Origin: Tubulanus polymorphus
Taxonomy: Eukaryota > Animalia > Nemertea
Reading direction: 5' to 3'
DNA: 64,000 bases
Assembly: GCF_964204645.1 (NCBI RefSeq)
Contig: NC_134035.1
Location: 8,836,451 to 8,900,450, forward strand
The first letter of the stretch is position 1. The number at the start of each line of letters is the position of its first letter. The notes under the pieces are model-generated. The model made no database searches. It was not told where the DNA came from and saw nothing but the letters and a program-made list of their open reading frames with translations. This document shows positions 22,636 to 64,000 of this stretch, in pieces. The position numbers were made by a program, and so were the translations under genes.

Positions 22636-24712
22636 GGCGCTATTGCACTTTCGTACCCCCCTCCCAAAAATGTTTATTTTAGCATATTATTTATCAGTGA
22701 GGTCTTAGGAATAAAAATCAGTAATTTTTATCCAAAAAAACTTACTTTTTTTGGGTCAAAATTTTAATATTTTGGGCCTGAATTAGAGCCGTTTTTTGAC
22801 CGAATGAGACGCCATATTGGTTTCTCCGACTCCACAGTCGTGCTAACTACCCCCGAAAACCGTCCTATGGAGCACTCCCACTTTCGGTCAGAGAAAACTG
22901 CGGGATCGTGGTTTTCGGGAGTGTTACAACTCGTGTATTTTCATATGGATTATTTCAATGAAGCAAGCTAGTGGTTCAGGCATAGCCAGCCATTTCTTGG
23001 ATATTTAGGTTGGCCCTTAAAAGGGCCGTTTTGACGGGAGGATGACAGAGGGACTAGACGACTAGACGACATAAAGATCAGTTGCTATCTGATTCCAAAA
23101 GTTGAAATAGGCATGATCACCAAAACGTTGGACCCACATGAATTCGGCTAGGTAATCGGGTATCATCGCGCGATTTGACGGACCAGCCATCGCTTTAAAT
23201 TTCGCCTTGGCTCGCTGCCACATCGCCTCCACACGGTTTGTCGTTACGGCTGTGGCTGGGTCGACGAAGTTGTTATGGTTGACTGTGCCGTGTTGGTACC
23301 CCAGCTGGCCAATCTGATTATATGCCTGCCACATATCAGACCATATGGTGGAGCCGGGACGAATCCATCGTTGTATGATTGGCAACAGCGTGGCAGCATC
23401 TCTCCTGGGTACCGGTACAAGGAAACCTTGTTTCGTCTCTGCCTCGTAGCCACCGAATATCCACTGCTCCGCCACGATTCGTCCCTGGTTATATTTTCGC
23501 CGAGCAAAAAGAGATTCGTCTATTTCTACCAGTCTACCTGGTCCACCAAGCTGTGTCGGATGATTTACGAAGTAGGACACACAGACATCGCGGCAGAACT
23601 GATTCCAATCGACGATGGTATGCTCCGACTGTATTTCAAGCTCGTGCATGGTGTCGGCAACACTCATGCCACGGCTTGAACCAGCACTTCGGCTCCAGAT
23701 GTAGGTGAGCCCCAGCAGCTGCCACAAGTGAAGATGCGACTTCTCGAAAAAACTCCCACGTCGAATACTAAAAACTCGCTTGCATCGTCGTGCTGTACAT
23801 CTCCAAGCCACTCCGTCGACGTAACGCGCCATACCCTGTTCTCGGCATTGGCCTCCGCAGTTTGGACACACCATATTATTCGCCAGCAGGCCATGCTGTC
23901 TACACCAGCCGATCGTGTGTTCTCTGTCATCCTTGAAATTCGCGCCGATTTGAATCAACGAAACAAAGTCGAACTCTGCCAAATCTGGAACGCGGGCCAT
24001 CTTCTCGCAGAAATAAGACGTTATGAACGAATTGAGCAGACCCATGACGACTTATATACTATTCACCCGTGAGAAAATCCAGAAGTCTCACGGCCACCAG
24101 CACCGGGATTGCCTCATGTAAAGTCTTTGATCCTGGCTTGATTGACATGGGAACCAGTAACCCTTCCGATTTTTGTCACGTACGCAGAAGAAAATACATT
24201 CAAATTAAAAAATAAAATGCTCTAATTGCTGCAGAAAAAGAATAAACAAGTAGATGATACAAATTATAGCTTTGTTTATATTTTTCAAATGTATATTACA
24301 TATGTTCTATTTTTAAGAATCTGGTCACAGTTTGAAAATATTATAAACTTTATTTAACCGATCCCAATTAGCAAACGATGCGTGGGCGGGTTGCAGCGCT
24401 TGACATGTGTCAATCGGCGCGCGTCGCACGTGTCCGTTCGGTGACCGTAGCCGGAGCGCTCCATACGTGGGAGTGCTCCATAGGACGGTTTTCGGGGGTA
24501 GTTAGCACGACTGTGGAGTCGGAGAAACCAATATGGCGTCCCATTCGGTCGAAAAACGGCTCTAATTCAGGCCCAAAATATTAAAATTTTGACCCAAAAA
24601 AAGTAAGTTTTTTTGGATAAAAATTACTGATTTTTATTCCTAAGACCTCACTGATAAATAATATGCTAAAATAAACATTTTTGGGAGGGGGGTACGAAAG
24701 TGCAATAGCGCC
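22636..24712 (-). mobile_element. Merlin (IS1595/IS1016-type) DNA transposon, apparently full length
   Basis: TIRs 22636-22881 and 24467-24712 (246 bp, 2 mismatches seen) begin GGCGCTATTGCAC. Perfect 8-bp TSD AAACCGTG at 22628-22635 and 24713-24720. Internal transposase ORF. Confidence 0.95.
23062..24045 (-). CDS. Merlin/ISXO2-like DDE transposase (327 aa; the start may be the second Met, MARVPD)
   Basis: Zn ribbon CPNC...WRC...C; catalytic motifs VEIDES, IWSDMWQAY, HGTVNH.NFVDP, TNRVEAMW and YLAEFMW; uninterrupted ORF. Confidence 0.93.
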   Translation of the reverse strand: MGLLNSFITSYFCEKMARVPDLAEFDFVSLIQIGANFKDDREHTIGWCRQHGLLANNMVCPNCGGQCREQGMARYVDGVAWRCTARRCKRVFSIRRGSFFEKSHLHLWQLLGLTYIWSRSAGSSRGMSVADTMHELEIQSEHTIVDWNQFCRDVCVSYFVNHPTQLGGPGRLVEIDESLFARRKYNQGRIVAEQWIFGGYEAETKQGFLVPVPRRDAATLLPIIQRWIRPGSTIWSDMWQAYNQIGQLGYQHGTVNHNNFVDPATAVTTNRVEAMWQRAKAKFKAMAGPSNRAMIPDYLAEFMWVQRFGDHAYFNFWNQIATDLYVV

Positions 24713-25430: not shown

Positions 25431-28400
25431 ATGGATCAAGAGGCACCTACCAAAATCAAGCGACGAGCATCAGACGCAAAATGGAGAGCAAACATCGCTC
25501 ATTGCTACGACAGTTTGAAAAAGATAATACCAACACCGAATGATTACCCGCGAAAGAAAATACCAAAGGTAGGTTACGAGTTGACCAAAAGTATCATGAG
25601 TATGTCGAACAAGTCAGTTCCACTGTTGACTGTTCCCAGGTGGAATTGGAGTGTAATTTTTTATACAAACTTTATTCCTTTTTTTTAGGTTTTAGTTTTG
25701 AAAGAATGCAACCAACACCTGAATTTCCTGGAACAAACTATCACTTTTCTACTCGACGTCTGTGGTAGGTTTTCATTTCACGTGGGTTTGATTGTATTTA
25801 ATGCGGACTCGTCCTTGAAATTTTCTCCCTTAAAGAAAACTACTCATCATAACCAAGAACGATAATCATTTGGCTATCGTTTTTTTTTTAAATTTAGATC
25901 AAAGTAAATCAGATTTACAAAAATGCGTCACGCTCGATTCTCTGAAGGATGAATTCGCCTGCGCCGAACAGCACAGAAAAGAAAAGTATGTCTCGTTTCT
26001 GTCTTCATTTCAGTGTTCTCCATACAGGCTATGCAAGAATTTGAAGAGGCTGCATTCATTGTTAAATGTATGGCATCATGGGTGCTAAACTAGTTAAGGC
26101 TTCCGATCTCCCAAAAAATACAGAAAATTAAACTAAATTTTGATATAGGACACCTAAATCTTCTATTTTTCACATTAGCTCGATATATTTCAAAGTAATT
26201 AAATCAGCATTGATAGAATATTGATATCCACTCTCTGGTAGAATGTTTACGGTCGTATTTCCAGAGTGAAAGAAGGCAAAACTACTTGCAATAAACACTT
26301 GGCTTTTTTCAACGGGTCGAATATTTCGAGTTGTTGTGATTCGGAGCCGTCGTATCAGTTACCGAGTCCGTTTCTGAAATCGAGTGGACTTCAACTGTTA
26401 CCCGAATGGTAGGTGTATTATAACTGCGTTGAATGAAGATCTCGATTGAATCGGAAATTCCATTCCGCATTTCAACGAGATTTTACTAAAATTTCTCACT
26501 TTCAGTTTGGTTAACAGGAACCAGTTCTACAGTTTTGACTTTGGCAGGTTTTGATTGGTCTCTTTCGATTCTGGAATTCTCTTACAATGCATTCGTTTCG
26601 ACCAGAATACGCTCTACCTATTCCAGAAATGCTTTATTTGTTAATGAGGCTGGTAGGGAGGTGGTACTCCACAATTACAAATCCTAAACCGGAATACGTT
26701 CTATCAAAACCTGTCTTAGTTACAATCTGTTCACTTTCAATGAGTTCAGTAATCTAAAATAGTACCGGTACCTAGAACAGTGAAAATATTGAAAATGAAC
26801 TATTCTCAACTCAAAGAGTCTTAACTCACAACGGTGGAATCTGCAGTTGTGAGTTGAACTGAACTGGAAGTTAGAACCAGTTCGCTTTCAATGAGTTTGC
26901 AGAAACCAGGATCCAGTTCCACAGTCGTGAGTTAGAGTTAACTCTGGGTTAAAATGAGTTCATTTCCAATGATTTAAGTCAAATCTTAACTCAGAACTGT
27001 GGAACTGGGTCCAGTTCATTAGTTATGAGTTACTTGGTCCTTTTTCAATGGGTAAACTTTTCAATCTAAACACCCGGTTAACAGTTGAAAATATTGAAAA
27101 TGATCTCAAACTCATGAGTTTAAGTCACAGAGTGACGATTCTTGTTTATCTATTCTTGCAGGATGTTTCATCGAATGCGAGAAGATTTACAAATCGAACT
27201 GAACGATCGAATGAAACGTCGTCGCGACGTCGCGATCGATTCAATCATTCGCTACAATTCGGCCGCGTATCCGAGAACCAAAATACGAAAACTAACCCCG
27301 TTTACCGAACCGATCGCGAAGAAAGAACCCGATGAACCGGTGAATTCTTCGAGTGGAACCGCGTTAAAAACGAACAGTTTAACGATGCCGAGCGCTGATC
27401 GACCGTTGAATGCGGCGGAGGCTGAAATCGCCGCTCGCGCGTTGGATTTTGAAACTCCCGCGAAACAGTGTTCCTCGATGACTGAACCTGTAAGTACAAA
27501 CGAGGAAAATTTGTTACGAATTAATTATATGACGCCTTGAAAAGAATGTAGGATGTTTAAGGAAAAGTTTATGTGGCAATAGGACCGGATAGCCACTTTC
27601 CTGGACATCAAGGAAAAGTCTGGGAATTTTCTTCTAAAAAGTCCGGGAATATTGGAAAATAGCTAAAAAAATCAGGGAAAATGCGGAAAATTTGTTGAGA
27701 TTGCTAGCTCGTATTATTGTATAGCCTTATGAATTGAATTTGTTTCTAAATAGGAAGAGAATCGTGACTTGGTAATAACAAGCACTCCTAACGATAACGC
27801 TTCAGTCAATCGGCAATCTGCATTTCGGGTAAGAATTTTTGCACGCTCTCCGCTCGAAAGAAAATTAACGAATCGTCAAGTATGCTTTATTTATTATTAC
27901 GATGTTTAGATTCAAGCCGCATCACCGGGATTTACGCCGATTCCTCGACTGCCTCGAACTCCGAACAGTCGATCGGAATTTATCGCGAAGGTCGACGAAA
28001 GCGCGCATTGCTCCGAGTTAATGAAGGGTTTCGATGAAATCAGGTACGATCGCGGTCAGTCAAATCGGTTGCCTGTTAGTCTCCGGATCAAGTTTCACAG
28101 TTGTGAGTTTGAATACACTCATTTCATTTTCAATGAGTGAACTCTGAGCAAAATCTTAACTCGTAAGCGTGGAACTTGAGCAAAATCTTAACTCGTAAGC
28201 GTGGAACTGGGTGCTGAGTTTAACGCATACCGTAATTTTGTCTTGTTGCATAATTCTAGCTCGAAGATGCCGAGAACTCCAAAACGCCGAAGACTGAATA
28301 TCGAACCTAGTCGTCGAGTTCGTAGGCGTCTGCTGTTAACAACCTACGACAGGTATTTGATCGATGATATTTTCTCGATCGGTTTATTCGTCGAATTTAT

Positions 28401-30974
28401 TGAAGGAAATGCCTTAAGATTGATAAACGTGTCTATTGCAGCCCCACAAAGGTGAAAGAGCCGGTCGAATTGAGGAAAGAGCATCCCAAATGTAGAATTA
28501 GACTAGACCGGTGCGTATATTTTAGTATCTGATTCCACAATTCTGGATTAGATTGCATCTTAAAACGTCAGAAACTGGTTCTATAGAACTGGCGTTATCA
28601 TTAAATCATGGGTTAACTCAATTGAAAATGAATTTAGTTAGCCCCTGCATCAAAGGTAATACCAGTCGATAAAACCGGGCCCAGGAATGAATTTAATTGT
28701 CAAGAGTTAACCTACTTTGGAACTTGGTCCTTGTTCTTTCTTCTGAGAACTTACTTATTGGTTAATAGATTAATGAATGAACGCAATGATAAGTCTTGTT
28801 TTTAATTTCAATCTGCTGCTGTAGATTGTATCCTGAAGAACAAATGAAAACGAAGTCTAGCTGTGAAACGCTAGTGAGTCCGTGTAAACATGTCGATAAC
28901 GTCATCAGTTCGTCTTCTATCAGTGGGTAAGTACCATGGCACAGTTCCATCGAACCTTCAGTAATACCTTGGCTAGTTGAGAAAAAGATGGAGACACGTT
29001 TAGCACCTATCTGTAGAGCCAGTTTCCTAGTTCTGCGCCGCCGGAAGCAAGTTCATCATATCCGACAGCCTAGGCGCTTATCGTGCAAAGATACGCACCT
29101 ATTTTTTTCAAGGGGTTCGGGGGTCTTCGGAGAAATTTTTTAAGATATTTTTCAAAGGGTTACATTTCGTAGGCTCTGGGGCTATTTGGGACGATAGTTT
29201 TCCGGTATCCTGATTCAGGTTGATTGCGTCACTTCGTTTATGAATGTTTTAGACGCAGCTGTCATAGTCGATTAGAGATATGTTTGAAAAAATCACGATC
29301 GGCAAAATTATGAACTTATCAAAAAAATTATGAAATTATCTAATTGTGAACATGGTTCTAATACGGTTACCGATAACACTTTCCCATTCGCTATTTTCAA
29401 TAAAAACGTTCCGTGGTTTCCTCTTCAGTTATGCCGCCTTCCATCGACAAGTGTCCGAACAACTGCGAATCTATCTACCGCCCGAGAAGGTCAATTCTGA
29501 ATCGATGAACAACACGATATTAGAAGTTTGGAAACAACTTCCCGACGATCAGAGGAACGCGATGGTCGCCATGGCGATGATGGGCGAATTGAATAAATCG
29601 TTGAGCAAAGATTTGGACGATATACGCTTGGAACCGATTTGCGATGACGATTTTGTCGATGTAACCGCGCGATGTAAGTTGAAATTAAAGTAGAGTCCGC
29701 TTAATTCGGAACGTTCGGGACCAACAAAATTTATCCGGTTTACGGGAAATCCGGATTAAAAAGTCATTTTCTTGTGCGGTATATTTGATGAACAAATGGA
29801 CTGCAAATATTGTCCGGATTAAGCCAATCCGGATTTATTATATAGAGATTTTAGAGAAATTCATTAATAACACCCCTAAGTACTATCTGCTAATTCCATT
29901 AGAATAGAATTAGAATTTCTTAGTGCAGCTAGATAATTGTACTCTCCATTTTTCCCGGTTTTTTTCAGTCCAGACTTCACATGTGTTCAGTGTTTCACCT
30001 GAGACATTTTTATTGAAATTGATCTACAAACGCTAGACTTTAGACATTTTATCAGTAAATTTTTTAGAAGCGATTGTTGACACTTGTACTTTACAATACA
30101 ATGTTCGACTGTCTGAAGTGCAGGCTCAGGGCGGCAAATGATCAGATTTTTGTTTACAATTAAGTTTTCCCTTTTCCATGAAGTTCCGCATTCATTTTCA
30201 GCTAATGAAATAGACGCGGATGTGTTGTGCGCGGTGAATGATTTAATGAATGGTACCGTTCCGAACCTTCACGACGCTTTACCCCCTCAAACCGACGGAC
30301 AACATACGTCGCCACCAAAATTGAATCTCAGTACTCCCGATTTCAAGAATCTCGATTTGTCAAATATCAATGAGGTTTGTTTATAGCGACGACGCTTATG
30401 AGGATTTTCTTGTTGAGATTTCTATTTTCGTTACTGACCAATGTATTCCACTTTCAGTCATTGCCATGGGTATCCGGATTCGAAATGGATTTGTTCAAAC
30501 ATATGTTTGATGAGAAAACTCTAGAAGCATCTTCTCCGATTGCTCTGACACTAGTAAGTAAAATACAGTGGCCGCTTTTATAGAAGAGAACATCTTTAAT
30601 CCCGAGGTTAAAGATGTTCCCTGGGCCTGGTTTTATAGACTGGTATAACCTTTAACCCGGGGGTTAACTCAATTGATCATGAATTGAGTTAGCCCTCGGG
30701 TTAAAGGTAATACCAGTCTAACCAACCGGGCCCTTACTCTTGGGTTAGTTTATACCAGTCTACAAAACTGGCCCCATAATCCCTCACTAGTCTGATATGG
30801 GGTTAAGACACAGTTTCTCAGTGTTTAGGCCCCTCCTTACGATGGTGTGAAATATACGAATATTTGTCTATTTTTCAGGCTGACGCCGATGATTGGCAGT
30901 TGATCAATCCTCTTGATCTCAGTGTTCCCGTCAATAAACGGCTATCATTGAACCTCCCGCTGCATGAAGAGTAA
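25431..30974 (+). CDS. STRA8/MEIOSIN-family HLH + HMG-like transcription regulator, closest by recalled motifs to STRA8; 14 coding exons, 618 aa
   Basis: Phase-consistent exons: 25431-25568, 25689-25764, 25898-25985, 26265-26408, 27162-27489, 27754-27828, 27910-28043, 28260-28352, 28442-28510, 28825-28926, 29429-29673, 30202-30374, 30458-30553, 30879-30974 (1857 nt, open). HLH: RRASDAKWRANIAHCYDSLKKII...KVLVLKECNQHLNFLEQTITFLL...TLDSLKDEF. HMG-like: GYAAFHRQ...TILEVWKQLPDDQR. Confidence 0.8.
26910..27011. mobile_element. Abundant Harbinger-like MITE of about 105 bp (GACCCAGTTCCACAG ends, CWG flanks); further copies near 12765, 12978, 16426, 28085, 43880, 52826 and 55327
   Basis: Long inverted ends with internal GAGTTAACTC and TTTTCAATGAG; CAG flanks both ends here and at 52826-52933. 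Confidence 0.8.
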
Positions 30975-41927: not shown

Positions 41928-42881
41928 ATGACGCGTCCACTTACAGTGGTAAGTGTTTTGCTGTTTTTTTATCTGCGTATCATTTTTAAATGAAAATTAA
42001 AAAGTGGATTTTGCCAATCCGCCATCAGGCATCAGCTGTTAAAAACTTTCTGTCACGAATCGTTTGTTTGGTTTGATTTGAATTCAGATTAAGCTACTAA
42101 ACGAGTATTTCAAGTTATAGCAAGTCCTTATATAATATTTAATTTCTCTCTGATATTTTCGCAGTTGAAGAGCGTCGGACCGAAGTTAGTTCCGTTTTTC
42201 AAAACGGTGGCGCTGTTCTTCGTGTTGTACCGCGGCGAATCGTACTCGTCGATATTCTACGCGATATTCAAGTGCCTGCCGATAATATCGTTGATATTTT
42301 TCGTCCTGTTGCACGGCATGAATTTCTCCGAGGTCTACTCGTATTCGCGACGCATCCTGATCGGTCTCGTGTTCTCGCTACTCGGCGACATCTGCATGGT
42401 TTATAAAACGGCCGGTTACTTCCTTCACGGCGTCGCTCTCTTCGGCGTCGCTCAGCTACTATACGCCTCGGCGTTCGGTATGCGCCCTTTTAACTTCAAG
42501 GCCGGCGGCGTGGTCGCGTCCCTCGGCGTAATAATCTACACGTTCGTTTTCTACCCGGCGATCACCGGTGTTTTATCGCCGGCGATCGGCGTGTACATGG
42601 CGCTGATCGGCGTAATGGTATGGCGCGCCGTTTCGCGCGTACAGCTATTCGACGACTTGTGGACGTGGACGAAGCTGTGCAGCTGCGGCGGCGCGATCCT
42701 GTTCGGGATTTCCGACATGATAATCGCGTTGGATAAATTCGTCATCGACATACCGCTGTCGCAGACGATCATCATGATCACGTATTACGGAGCGCAGTTG
42801 GGTATTACGCTTTCGGTCGTCGACAGTCACGTCGATTCCCTCATCGAAACGACGAAGCCGCGACCGATTAAGGTCGATTAA
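41928..42881 (+). CDS. TMEM86A: Lysoplasmalogenase-like protein (YhhN family), 245 aa
   Basis: Exons 41928-41948 (MTRPLTV) and 42165-42881; motifs KSVGPKLVPFFK, KCLPI, GLVFSLLGD, MVWRA, GAILFGISD, IMITYYGAQLGI. Confidence 0.93.
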
Positions 42882-60296: not shown

Positions 60297-60974
60297 TTTC
60301 TCAATTGTCGTAAAGAAAGATGGCTTCGCAGGAAACCTATTTATCTCTTAGCAAACCCAACTATACCGATAAAGAATTTCAATTTTCCGGCTCAATAACC
60401 GATTCTATTTATTTATTCATAATTTTTAAAGAACATTTCATATCAAACTTTGATCCTGAACGAATGACAGTTCGACGAGTTTGAAAGGTAGAGAAATCGC
60501 GGTACAGCGGTATCGCCGTAAATAGTGAGGTCCGCCCGTTGAATGTATTATGCGAGGCATAAAATTAATCAGCTCGGTCCTAATAATACATCGACCAGTT
60601 ACCGGTGGAGTATACTCAGTAATTAACAGGTGAGTTTGGGTGTAATTAGTGTGTCTTGTTAGTGTTAGTGTGTGTCGTGCGTGTGTTTGGATGTTATCGG
60701 ATTGTGTTTGAGTAGTGTATGAGTTGAAGAGACCGGGTCCGCTCTGAGCGGGGGCTGCATGCATAATGAGATGATGATTGACTGGCAGCGGCGGCGGTCC
60801 GACACGTGATGCTGACTGGCTGATGCTATGAATAGTCGACGTCATCACCAGGTCAATTACCGGCCAATGCTATGACCCGATTCTCTGAACAAAGATAGAG
60901 TAGACTAGAGCTGGTGCTGGGCATTGATGGTTGTTAGTTGTGCAGCATCTCGAGCCGTTGCAGGGAACGCTACA
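60297..60974. promoter_or_regulatory. Divergent promoter region between HSD17B12 and the DUF3504 gene, with a probable non-coding first exon
   Basis: 678 bp between start codons; donor CAG|GTGAGT at 60629/60630 and acceptor TGTGCAG ending at 60945. Confidence 0.55.
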
Positions 60975-62439
60975 ATGGCGGCCATTATGATCAAAACAGA
61001 GCCTTTGGATTTTGAATACGGAGATGCAGGAGGTGATGGTACAGCTTTTGTAATAGATGAAGATACGTATGTAGTGTTACCCACTGATGCCGATGACGTT
61101 ACTGATGGAGATATCAACGAGACCGGATTAGCTATAGGCGAACCTTACTCGCTGGTGAACGCCGATCAACTCGATTCCGATCTGACCGGCGCCGATTCGC
61201 TGCTCGCGAAGGAGGACTCAAGTTTGTTAGATCAGGCGTGCGTTCAGCTGTCGTCGCCGTCGGGAATCTCGACGCAAAACGCCACCAAATACGCCGTGTC
61301 GGTTTTCAAAGATTTCTGCGTCGGTAAAAGCTATTCGCCGGCCGCCGTCGACGAACTTACGTCGTCCTGTTTACAAGCGTTGTTGACGAGTTTCTATCAG
61401 GAAGTTCGCACGGGACGCGGCGCCCTCTATACGAAGAAATCGCTGCAGTGCATACGCCACGGGTTACAGCGCCATTTTCTGAACCTCGGCACGGGTATCG
61501 ACATCGTGAAGGACGAAGAGTTCAAAGACGCGAACGTGATTTTCGCGACCGTCTGCAAAGACCCGGCGCGCAACAACACGGCGCAGTCGGTTCAGATTCA
61601 AAAACCGCTTCTCATCAAATCGGACATAAAAAAAATCGAAACGTATTTCCTCGACTACGACAAATCGAACAAGAAACTGCAGCAGAAAATATTCTACGAT
61701 TTCATCACGTTTTTAGGGTTTAAAGGTCGCGAGGCGTTGCGACACGTGTCGACGGAGGTGTTCATCGTGCGCCAGGACGACACAGGTCAGAAATACGTGC
61801 TGCTAACGGACGGAACTAACTACCTCGGCGATCTGATCAGCGGTTGGAAGGAGGACGATACGGCCGACGTGAGCGGGGCCGTCATGTTCGAACGGCCCGG
61901 CGACCCGCTCTGCCCGGTGAAAGCGTTCGAATTATACGTGTCGAAGTTGAACCCGTGTTGCAATGCATTTTTTCAGTACCCGCGCGACACGTATTCGCGA
62001 ACCGACGGCGTCTGGTTCGAAAACCGTCCGGTCGGCAAAAACAATCTCGGTCAGATGATGCAGGTGATCTCGAAGGAGGCCGAACTGTCGCAGATCTACA
62101 CGAACTATTCGATACGCGTGACGTGTTTGAACGTGCTCGGCGAGTTCGGGTTCACGCCGTTCAGCGCGGCGATCTCGTCGAAGTACGCCGACTTCGCGAC
62201 GTTGAAACGACAGATCGCCGACACGGTCGCCGAGGAGCTCGGATACACGTCGGGCAGTACGTGTCGTACGAACGGCGAAGAGTACCGCGCGCCGCCGACG
62301 CCGCCCGTCAAAACGCCGACCGCCGCCATCGAAAAACGTACGTCGTCGAACAAAAAACGTAAGTCGGACACGCCGGTGCGCCGGACGCCGACGAAAAAAA
62401 ATAAAGTCGAAATCGTAACGTGCGACACTCCGGATTCTG
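60975..62439 (+). CDS. Crypton-derived DUF3504 (ZMYM/QRICH1/KCTD1-like) protein, first coding exon; continues downstream
   Basis: Likely start ACAATGGCG (MAAIMIKTE). Motifs LL.SFY.EVR...G..Y...SL...R.GL.R, LQ.KIFYD...LGFKGRE.LR, M......PLCPV..F..Y.SKL, WF...PVGKN.L..MM..IS..A.LS..YTN.SIR.T. Donor G|GTAAGT at 62439/62440. Confidence 0.85.
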
Positions 62440-64000
62440 GTAAGTATTCGATCGTTTACAGGGTTCCGCTGAAATTCAGACTAGTTCAAATAAGACTTGA
62501 GAAGACGGATCGAGGTCGGTTCTAAATTTCAGAATGGGCCATTTCTCCGCGTGTCCAGCTGGACCGGTGAGAATAGCTTAAATTCTTCGAAAAATATTGG
62601 TGTCTTTTGTTAATCGGTTGTATTTCTTGTCGGTAGTATTTTTCTTAGGTAGTATTTATTGGGAACGGATTAAGCATTAGCATTTATTTGAAAAGCCTGT
62701 CCTATATAGGTTAGATCTGTTCCATCGAATGGACCGAAAAGTCTGATCGAGGTTCATTCTAAATTTCAGAGTGGGCCGTTTCTCCGCGTGTCCAGCTGGA
62801 CCGGCGAGAATAGCTTAAATTCTTCGAAAACTACTGGTGTTAATTCGGTCAATACAAAGTATGGGTCAAATTAGTATTGACCACTAGCTGATATTGTGAA
62901 TGCAGTTTAAGGTGTAACCAGTTTATTCTGAGTTGGTCAAGGTTTATTGTTCTGCTGGTGGATGTATGTGGCAGGTGATTTTCCTCAGAGGCACAGTTGC
63001 TACGGGTTACAATTTCAATGCCCCTGTTATATGAGAATATTCGAGAAGGATTGAGAGCCTCTACGCGCGCGTTTAGTATGGCTAATCGATGATGTCAGGC
63101 CTGCTTAGAAACGTGTTAGAATTTCTCTTGAATCGCCCTGTTATTATAAGAATAGGACCCACTTTCATAGTTTGGGCCTCGCTTGTAGCAGCTGTGGCTA
63201 GTTGCGCGGTGCATCACATGCTAGTCATTGTGTATCGCAATGGTCTTTATGTAAGACCATCACTACTTTATTGATGCCCTATACAGATTATACGGGTTGA
63301 TCGTTACGCAGAATCGCCGAATAGAATGTATTGCGAAGTTCTGTGAGAATTAGGTTTTTCTATTATCTTGAGTGGTCGTGCTTGATCGATTCATCGAGTG
63401 ACTTTTTCCTGTTGAAAATTCGACCGCAATGCATTTAGTCTCCCTATATGATTGATAGTTGAACCTTTATTATTGATTTAGGCTGGATTACTGTATTAGG
63501 CAAAATGAACCTTTGTTCGATAAATAATACGGTGAAAAAATTAGGTCAAATGAGAAGCGATATAATTTTATCAGGAATCTATGCCCCCTCGTTGCGGATG
63601 CTATTTGATTTACTGATGGATCTGGTTTGTGGATATTTCGAGGGCTGGTTTTAAAGTACGGATGGACTCGGTATGCTATGCTATGCTATGCGATAATGGT
63701 AAAAGGCTGACATTTAGAGATGACCAATAATGTATGAGTCACGTATACGGCTAGTGTATAGCGGGTTACAGTACACTCTCTCTCTCACATACACAGTAAA
63801 CATCAGGCTTCTCTCAATAACTGCGGCGATGTATATGCTCTGTATACAGTACAACGCCTGCAGTCCGCCACTCTATTCATCTGTACTACTCGGCGCTCAG
63901 CTCTCGCTGCTGTAGCCATGCCTACAGGCTTTAGGAATTGATTTCATACACACTGACTGCTGACATAAGCATCAGGGCGGGGAACAGGCGGTAACCGTTA

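Follow-up and report, generated by a model that had tools for sequence, protein, structure and literature searches.

A credible but unproven STRA8 relative encoded in the genome of the ribbon worm Tubulanus polymorphus

To our knowledge, STRA8, which triggers meiosis in vertebrates, and MEIOSIN are the only animal proteins in which a domain of the basic helix-loop-helix (bHLH) type is combined with an HMG-like domain. Little has been learned about how non-vertebrate animals take the decision to switch from mitosis to meiosis, and current work places the MEIOSIN-STRA8 axis in vertebrates, comparing vertebrates alone (PMC13637641). The HMG box of mouse STRA8 (residues about 216-268) was itself detected solely by fold recognition (PMC6392498), and the LxCxE motif of STRA8 serves RB binding, according to two reports (PMC10600341, PMC13637641). 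An amphioxus Stra8 was published in 2013 as a reciprocal best hit (8e-09; PMC3769385), so that the description of STRA8 as vertebrate-restricted, repeated in the original prediction for the DNA analysed here, was slightly overstated; this sentence on amphioxus is the only earlier non-vertebrate mention found in the literature, where no report of a protostome STRA8 was found. The present study concerns a gene at 25431-30974 (+) of a 64,000-nucleotide stretch of the genome of Tubulanus polymorphus (the window; NC_134035.1, positions 8,836,451 to 8,900,450 of the forward strand), the product of which is a credible, though unproven, first protostome relative of STRA8.

The locus is a real gene of 14 exons. 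Exons 1-7 lie at 25431-25568, 25689-25764, 25898-25985, 26265-26408, 27162-27489, 27754-27828 and 27910-28043, and exons 8-14 at 28260-28352, 28442-28510, 28825-28926, 29429-29673, 30202-30374, 30458-30553 and 30879-30974, all on the forward strand; a coordinate script confirmed that all acceptors are AG, all donors are GT and the phases are compatible, and the exons sum to 1857 nt, i.e., 618 codons and a stop codon, with zero internal stops. An exhaustive phmmer search with exon 11 as the sole query returned a public 618-aa protein (P0001), which is 100% identical across that exon and, in its full sequence, the same as the 14-exon model; it is the NCBI RefSeq entry [quoted passage not shown], from a palaeonemertean ribbon worm. 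Exon-level searches were made with single exons, and the public record was used for all work on the whole protein. With this protein as query, the six-frame search of the 268-Mb assembly recovered all of the exons here and gave no match elsewhere at E up to 1; there is no paralogue, and the gene is single-copy. The splice sites, the phases, the open frame and the identical RefSeq protein thus bear out the 14-exon, 618-aa open gene originally proposed, and the strings that had been cited for the ribbon-worm protein are present at residues 11-22, 29-33, 46-50, 56-64, 83-91, 416-422 and 444-457.

Profile searches place a bHLH domain at residues 8-69 (25452-25757, +), where a phase-0 intron (25569-25688), following residue 46, separates the loop from helix 2. 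With the generic HLH model of Pfam (PF00010, gathering cut-off 20.7 bits), the full-length protein scored 22.2 bits and residues 1-115 by themselves 24.7 bits, and by these scores the HLH domain is judged genuine but weak; the HLH assigned from the letters alone to an atypical block of this region was therefore upheld. PF23175 (bHLH_STRA8), the sole bHLH model matched besides the generic one, gave 15.1 bits with the full-length protein and 18.5 bits with residues 1-115, both under its cut-off of 25 bits. When 40 further bHLH segments of the same genome were used as controls, three matched PF23175 (14.1, 13.2 and 13.9 bits) and none reached 15 bits; LOC141913169 ranks first of the 41 bHLHs on this model, yet worst of the 41 on generic HLH. 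Other bHLHs with low generic scores reach 69-79 bits with the models of their respective subfamilies (NCOA, HIF1A), which gives no hint that LOC141913169 belongs to another known subfamily; no SOHLH-specific family was among its Pfam matches, where no test was aimed at SOHLH. A single PF23175 match (L001, G000:C8:12950500-12950604, 16.8 bits) was obtained in the six-frame search of the whole genome, and it was rejected as a chance match because it lies antisense to a 327-aa open reading frame (ORF) resembling a seven-helix membrane receptor.

Among sequences of solved structure, the closest to this bHLH in HMMER searches were TAL1 (E 0.02) and Twist1 (E 0.41), the alignments covering helix 1, the loop and helix 2. 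The alignment to TAL1 showed Ala in the column of the Glu with which TAL1 contacts the E-box, so that the conserved basic-region Glu of E-box-type bHLHs, which contacts CANNTG, is replaced in the ribbon-worm protein; mouse STRA8 likewise binds a non-E-box motif (PMC6392498). An additional helix is predicted past the bHLH, in exon 3 (residues 72-100; 25898-25985, +), which a phase-1 intron following residue 71 precedes, from the extent of the structural alignments described below and from an AlphaFold 2 (AF2) model of residues 1-115, which has a helix at 84-103 and a predicted local distance difference test (pLDDT) score of 48. A Foldseek search with the latter model returned histone-like rows only, which were judged meaningless.

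A second domain, HMG-box-like and three-helical, is predicted at residues about 411-481 (28912-29627, +), encoded by the last part of exon 10 and the greater part of exon 11, with the phase-2 intron 28927-29428 inside, at residue 415. Sequence comparison gave no relatives of this region: in Pfam, exon 11 with its flanking parts had no match at E up to 10, the HMG models PF00505 and PF09011 matched neither the whole protein nor residues 400-525 at E up to 10, a word search found nothing at E up to 10, and the exhaustive phmmer search with exon 11 against 1.84 billion representative proteins (E up to 0.001) returned only LOC141913169 itself. The matches of residues 405-500 to PDB sequences in phmmer were chance matches, as was a second protein returned by the sequence searches (P0002), a junk repeat protein.

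The fold of this region was assessed with a single-sequence AF2 model of residues 400-525, in which helices were predicted at 411-431, 439-452 and 455-478 (mean pLDDT 46, core 63-70). The best PDB rows of Foldseek for this model were nearly all HMG boxes, each with an E-value of 0.35 or worse. VIA-align gave a Z-score of 9.0 to the HMG box of SSRP1 (root-mean-square deviation 2.2 Å over 68 residues) and 8.2 to SOX30; all 40 of the top chains were HMG boxes (Z 9.0-5), and unrelated folds began at Z 4.7. As Z-scores under 8 are common with small helical models, the support for an HMG-box-like fold is read as good but not conclusive. Like the box of mouse STRA8, the predicted domain lies C-terminal to the bHLH and is detected by fold recognition, in a model with a pLDDT of 46. 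The segment originally called HMG-like is thus HMG-box-like at the level of predicted fold, according to VIA-align and the ESM Atlas. Of the profile comparisons envisaged with STRA8 and with generic bHLH and HMG families, the HLH part succeeded above its cut-off, while PF23175 stayed below its own and no HMG profile matched.

The ESM Atlas, a library of 7.7 million clusters, includes LOC141913169 with a model of its own (whole-protein pLDDT 0.43), and searches with parts of this model provide the link to STRA8. For residues 1-110, two chordate STRA8 clusters lead the structure search, with template modelling (TM) scores of 0.78 and 0.70 (104 and 99 aa), and the alignment to STRA8 spans residues 1-107 (104 aligned); clusters of AP-4, TFE3, Myc and other bHLH proteins align over about 76 residues at TM 0.5-0.6. 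For residues 405-520, three STRA8 clusters lead at TM 0.66, 0.50 and 0.56 over 94, 81 and 92 residues, followed by true HMG_box clusters at TM 0.44, TM scores of such short helical pieces carrying little meaning alone. The feature search with residues 405-520 also placed a STRA8 cluster at the top, with a weak 0.76, in a range (0.76-0.77) that shuffled proteins attain too. A shape search of the Atlas with the independent AF2 model of residues 400-525 again had a STRA8 cluster first (TM 0.36), with TFAM and SOX18 after it and no TM score of 0.4 or more among them. Both domains are therefore nearest to STRA8 in structure, with predicted models on both sides of the comparison and an uncalibrated ranking. 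That two non-overlapping regions, searched separately, each lead to one and the same small family among 7.7 million clusters is the strongest evidence of homology.

Our best explanation, to which we give about an even chance, is that LOC141913169 belongs to the bHLH-HMG clade of STRA8 and MEIOSIN, as a highly diverged homologue with STRA8 as its closest relative. Several observations weigh against it. The PF23175 score is under the cut-off, is exceeded by that of the generic HLH model and surpasses the best control bHLH by a mere 4-5 bits. STRA8 was reached neither by exhaustive phmmer with the exon 11 query (E up to 0.001) nor by the word searches, and these searches, run from the side of the ribbon-worm protein, found no significant pairwise similarity to a known STRA8, returning the protein itself only. 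There is no LxCxE (L.C.E) motif anywhere in the protein, the nearest form being FACAE at residue 91. A Glu-rich linker between the bHLH and the HMG-like domain is missing as well, with no acidic window in residues 100-400; since the Glu stretch of STRA8 is poorly conserved between species, even among vertebrates (PMC6392498), this absence weighs little. The protein, at 618 aa, is about 1.6-1.9 times the length of vertebrate STRA8 proteins and cluster representatives (330-393 aa). To these points are added the low confidence of the Atlas and AF2 models (whole-protein pLDDT 0.43 and AF2 46-48, respectively), the little meaning of the short TM scores, the feature scores shared with shuffled proteins and the lack of RNA support among the sequencing runs, described below. 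Of the STRA8 interpretation given originally, the real gene, the bHLH, the HMG-like fold and the chordate STRA8 clusters nearest to both regions stand; the sub-threshold PF23175 score, the failure of any sequence search to reach STRA8, and the absence of LxCxE and of a Glu-rich linker leave the remainder unsupported.

Many of the same observations would be expected if the protein were a lineage-specific, fast-evolving bHLH unrelated to STRA8, with a three-helix region that is an independent or chance HMG-like bundle and a likeness that is convergent or an artefact of the predicted models. The higher score of the generic HLH model, TAL1 as the top PDB sequence match, the three of 40 ordinary bHLHs that also attain 13-14 bits on PF23175, the lack of a detectable sequence relative in the searches run, the low-confidence models and the feature scores of 0.76-0.77 within the range of shuffled proteins all fit such an origin. 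It does not readily account for two non-overlapping regions each placing STRA8 clusters first among 7.7 million, for a domain order that is the same as in STRA8, or for the absence of a match comparable to the 69-79 bits that other divergent bHLHs reach on their own subfamily models, and on balance we consider it somewhat unlikely. The two-domain order is equally that of MEIOSIN, and the protein could instead be orthologous to MEIOSIN (BHMG1), or to one ancestral bHLH-HMG gene older than the split of STRA8 and MEIOSIN. It is the sole such gene found, with no paralogue, and six-frame genome scans revealed no obvious separate MEIOSIN-like gene, no canonical HLH match lying within 30 kb of a canonical HMG_box match; these scans miss the LOC141913169 gene too, so that this absence says little, and a second diverged gene could escape such coarse family searches. 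The Atlas search may not reach MEIOSIN clusters because of their small size, in which case STRA8 could be merely the nearest of the families available. The nearest structural neighbours found are, however, all STRA8, and the HMG domain of MEIOSIN is described as conserved (PMC13637641), whereas the ribbon-worm protein has no Pfam HMG_box match at all; we regard this second origin as improbable.

Very improbable, in our estimate, is a mispredicted or decaying locus without a functional product. The four runs that match the locus (X1-X4) are genomic contigs collinear with the introns, and no RNA run matches; a small 2015 run, presumed to be RNA from the same species, shows nothing at the locus. 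The listed differences between individuals within exons, an incomplete list, comprise five amino-acid replacements and four silent changes, which would suit a dead locus; with nine differences in 1857 nt of exon, as opposed to 31 in 3944 nt of introns and flanking sequence, the numbers are too small, and the list too incomplete, to reveal selection. Against decay stand 14 exons that remain open, with consensus splice sites, across 5.5 kb of repeat-rich sequence, the identical independent public prediction and the two regions with recognisable folds.

On our best explanation, the gene is functional and LOC141913169 is a nuclear transcription factor that combines a bHLH with an HMG-like domain. 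Through its HLH the protein would dimerise, either with a second copy or with a different HLH protein, and, as the basic region is without the usual E-box-contacting Glu, we propose that this region and the degenerate HMG-like domain may together bind a non-E-box site. The linker between the domains, about 300 residues long, is basic and rich in Ser, Thr and Pro, and carries runs of Lys/Arg at 167-170, 336-339 and 349-351; the last two, in exon 8 (28260-28352, +), where the net charge is +7 to +8 in windows covering 321-380, form a candidate nuclear localisation signal, and the basic runs of the linker could carry the protein into the nucleus. The C-terminal third (residues about 461-618, exons 11-14; 29565-30974, +) has a net charge of -3 to -7 in each 40-residue window from residue 461 onward and no match to a Pfam family; it is a candidate activation region by its charge, and this acidic tail might activate transcription. 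A role of the gene in meiosis is pure inference, and it seems to us quite unlikely that a STRA8/MEIOSIN-type gene has persisted in a spiralian nearly past sequence recognition while still gating entry into meiosis. No DR2 or DR5 (retinoic-acid response) elements were found within the window, which says little, as chance predicts the same.

The gene lies in repeat-rich sequence. An intact 327-aa ORF on the opposite strand (23062-24045, -), 1.4 kb upstream of the start codon, contains an ISXO2-like transposase domain (PF12762, 74.5 bits). Intron 13 holds a palindromic element resembling a miniature inverted-repeat transposable element (30623-30733), with 55-nt arms that are 85% complementary, and a partial copy, 78% identical, is located in intron 9 (28588-28682); the contig word depth at the element, in the thousands, indicates that it is highly repeated in the genome. 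The intron segments 26852-27045 and 29956-30149 are very high-copy repeats, with contig word depths that add up to about 115,000 and 50,000, respectively, in run X1 (exons, about 40). Many contigs jump between positions 269xx and 280xx-281xx. One X1 contig differs from the window by 24 letters and two gaps over 510 bases (29328-29837), and, since exon 11 has a lower density of differences than the introns, it probably represents a second haplotype. Farther along the window, a single-exon 238-aa ORF (42165-42881, +) belongs to the YhhN family (PF07947, 139.6 bits), which we take to include the animal TMEM86 lysoplasmalogenases. A 533-aa ORF in a G+C-richer stretch (60924-62525, +) matches DUF3504 at 30.3 bits (cut-off 29.7) and QRICH1 at 21.3 bits (below the cut-off of 30.8), a pairing that we presume to be that of domesticated Crypton-type elements and that suggests a candidate origin for this ORF.

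Should the relationship to STRA8 be true, the occurrence of this two-domain layout in a protostome would move the origin of the module back to early bilaterians, and LOC141913169 would be a concrete spiralian candidate for work on meiotic entry; should the likeness be convergent, it would be one more orphan bHLH factor. Compared with the tissue bHLHs of classes A and B, it has in TAL1 and Twist1 the best solved-structure sequence matches of its bHLH, and differs from them in that the E-values are just 0.02 and 0.41, the E-box Glu is replaced by Ala, and TAL1 and Twist1 have no HMG-like domain. With MEIOSIN (BHMG1) it shares a single chain in which an HMG-type domain comes after a bHLH, and long non-globular regions; unlike the HMG domain of MEIOSIN, described as conserved (PMC13637641), its own has no Pfam HMG_box match, and none of the searches gave a MEIOSIN neighbour. 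The differences from STRA8 (about 330-393 aa) comprise the length of 618 aa, a linker that is basic and Ser/Thr/Pro-rich and not Glu-rich, the missing LxCxE motif, the PF23175 score below the cut-off and the lack of a pairwise sequence match. The likenesses comprise an atypical bHLH at the N-terminus with one more helix after it, an HMG-like domain downstream that is recognisable only at the fold level, an acidic C-terminal part and the same order of domains, together with PF23175 as the sole subfamily model matched and STRA8 clusters as the nearest structural neighbours of both domains.

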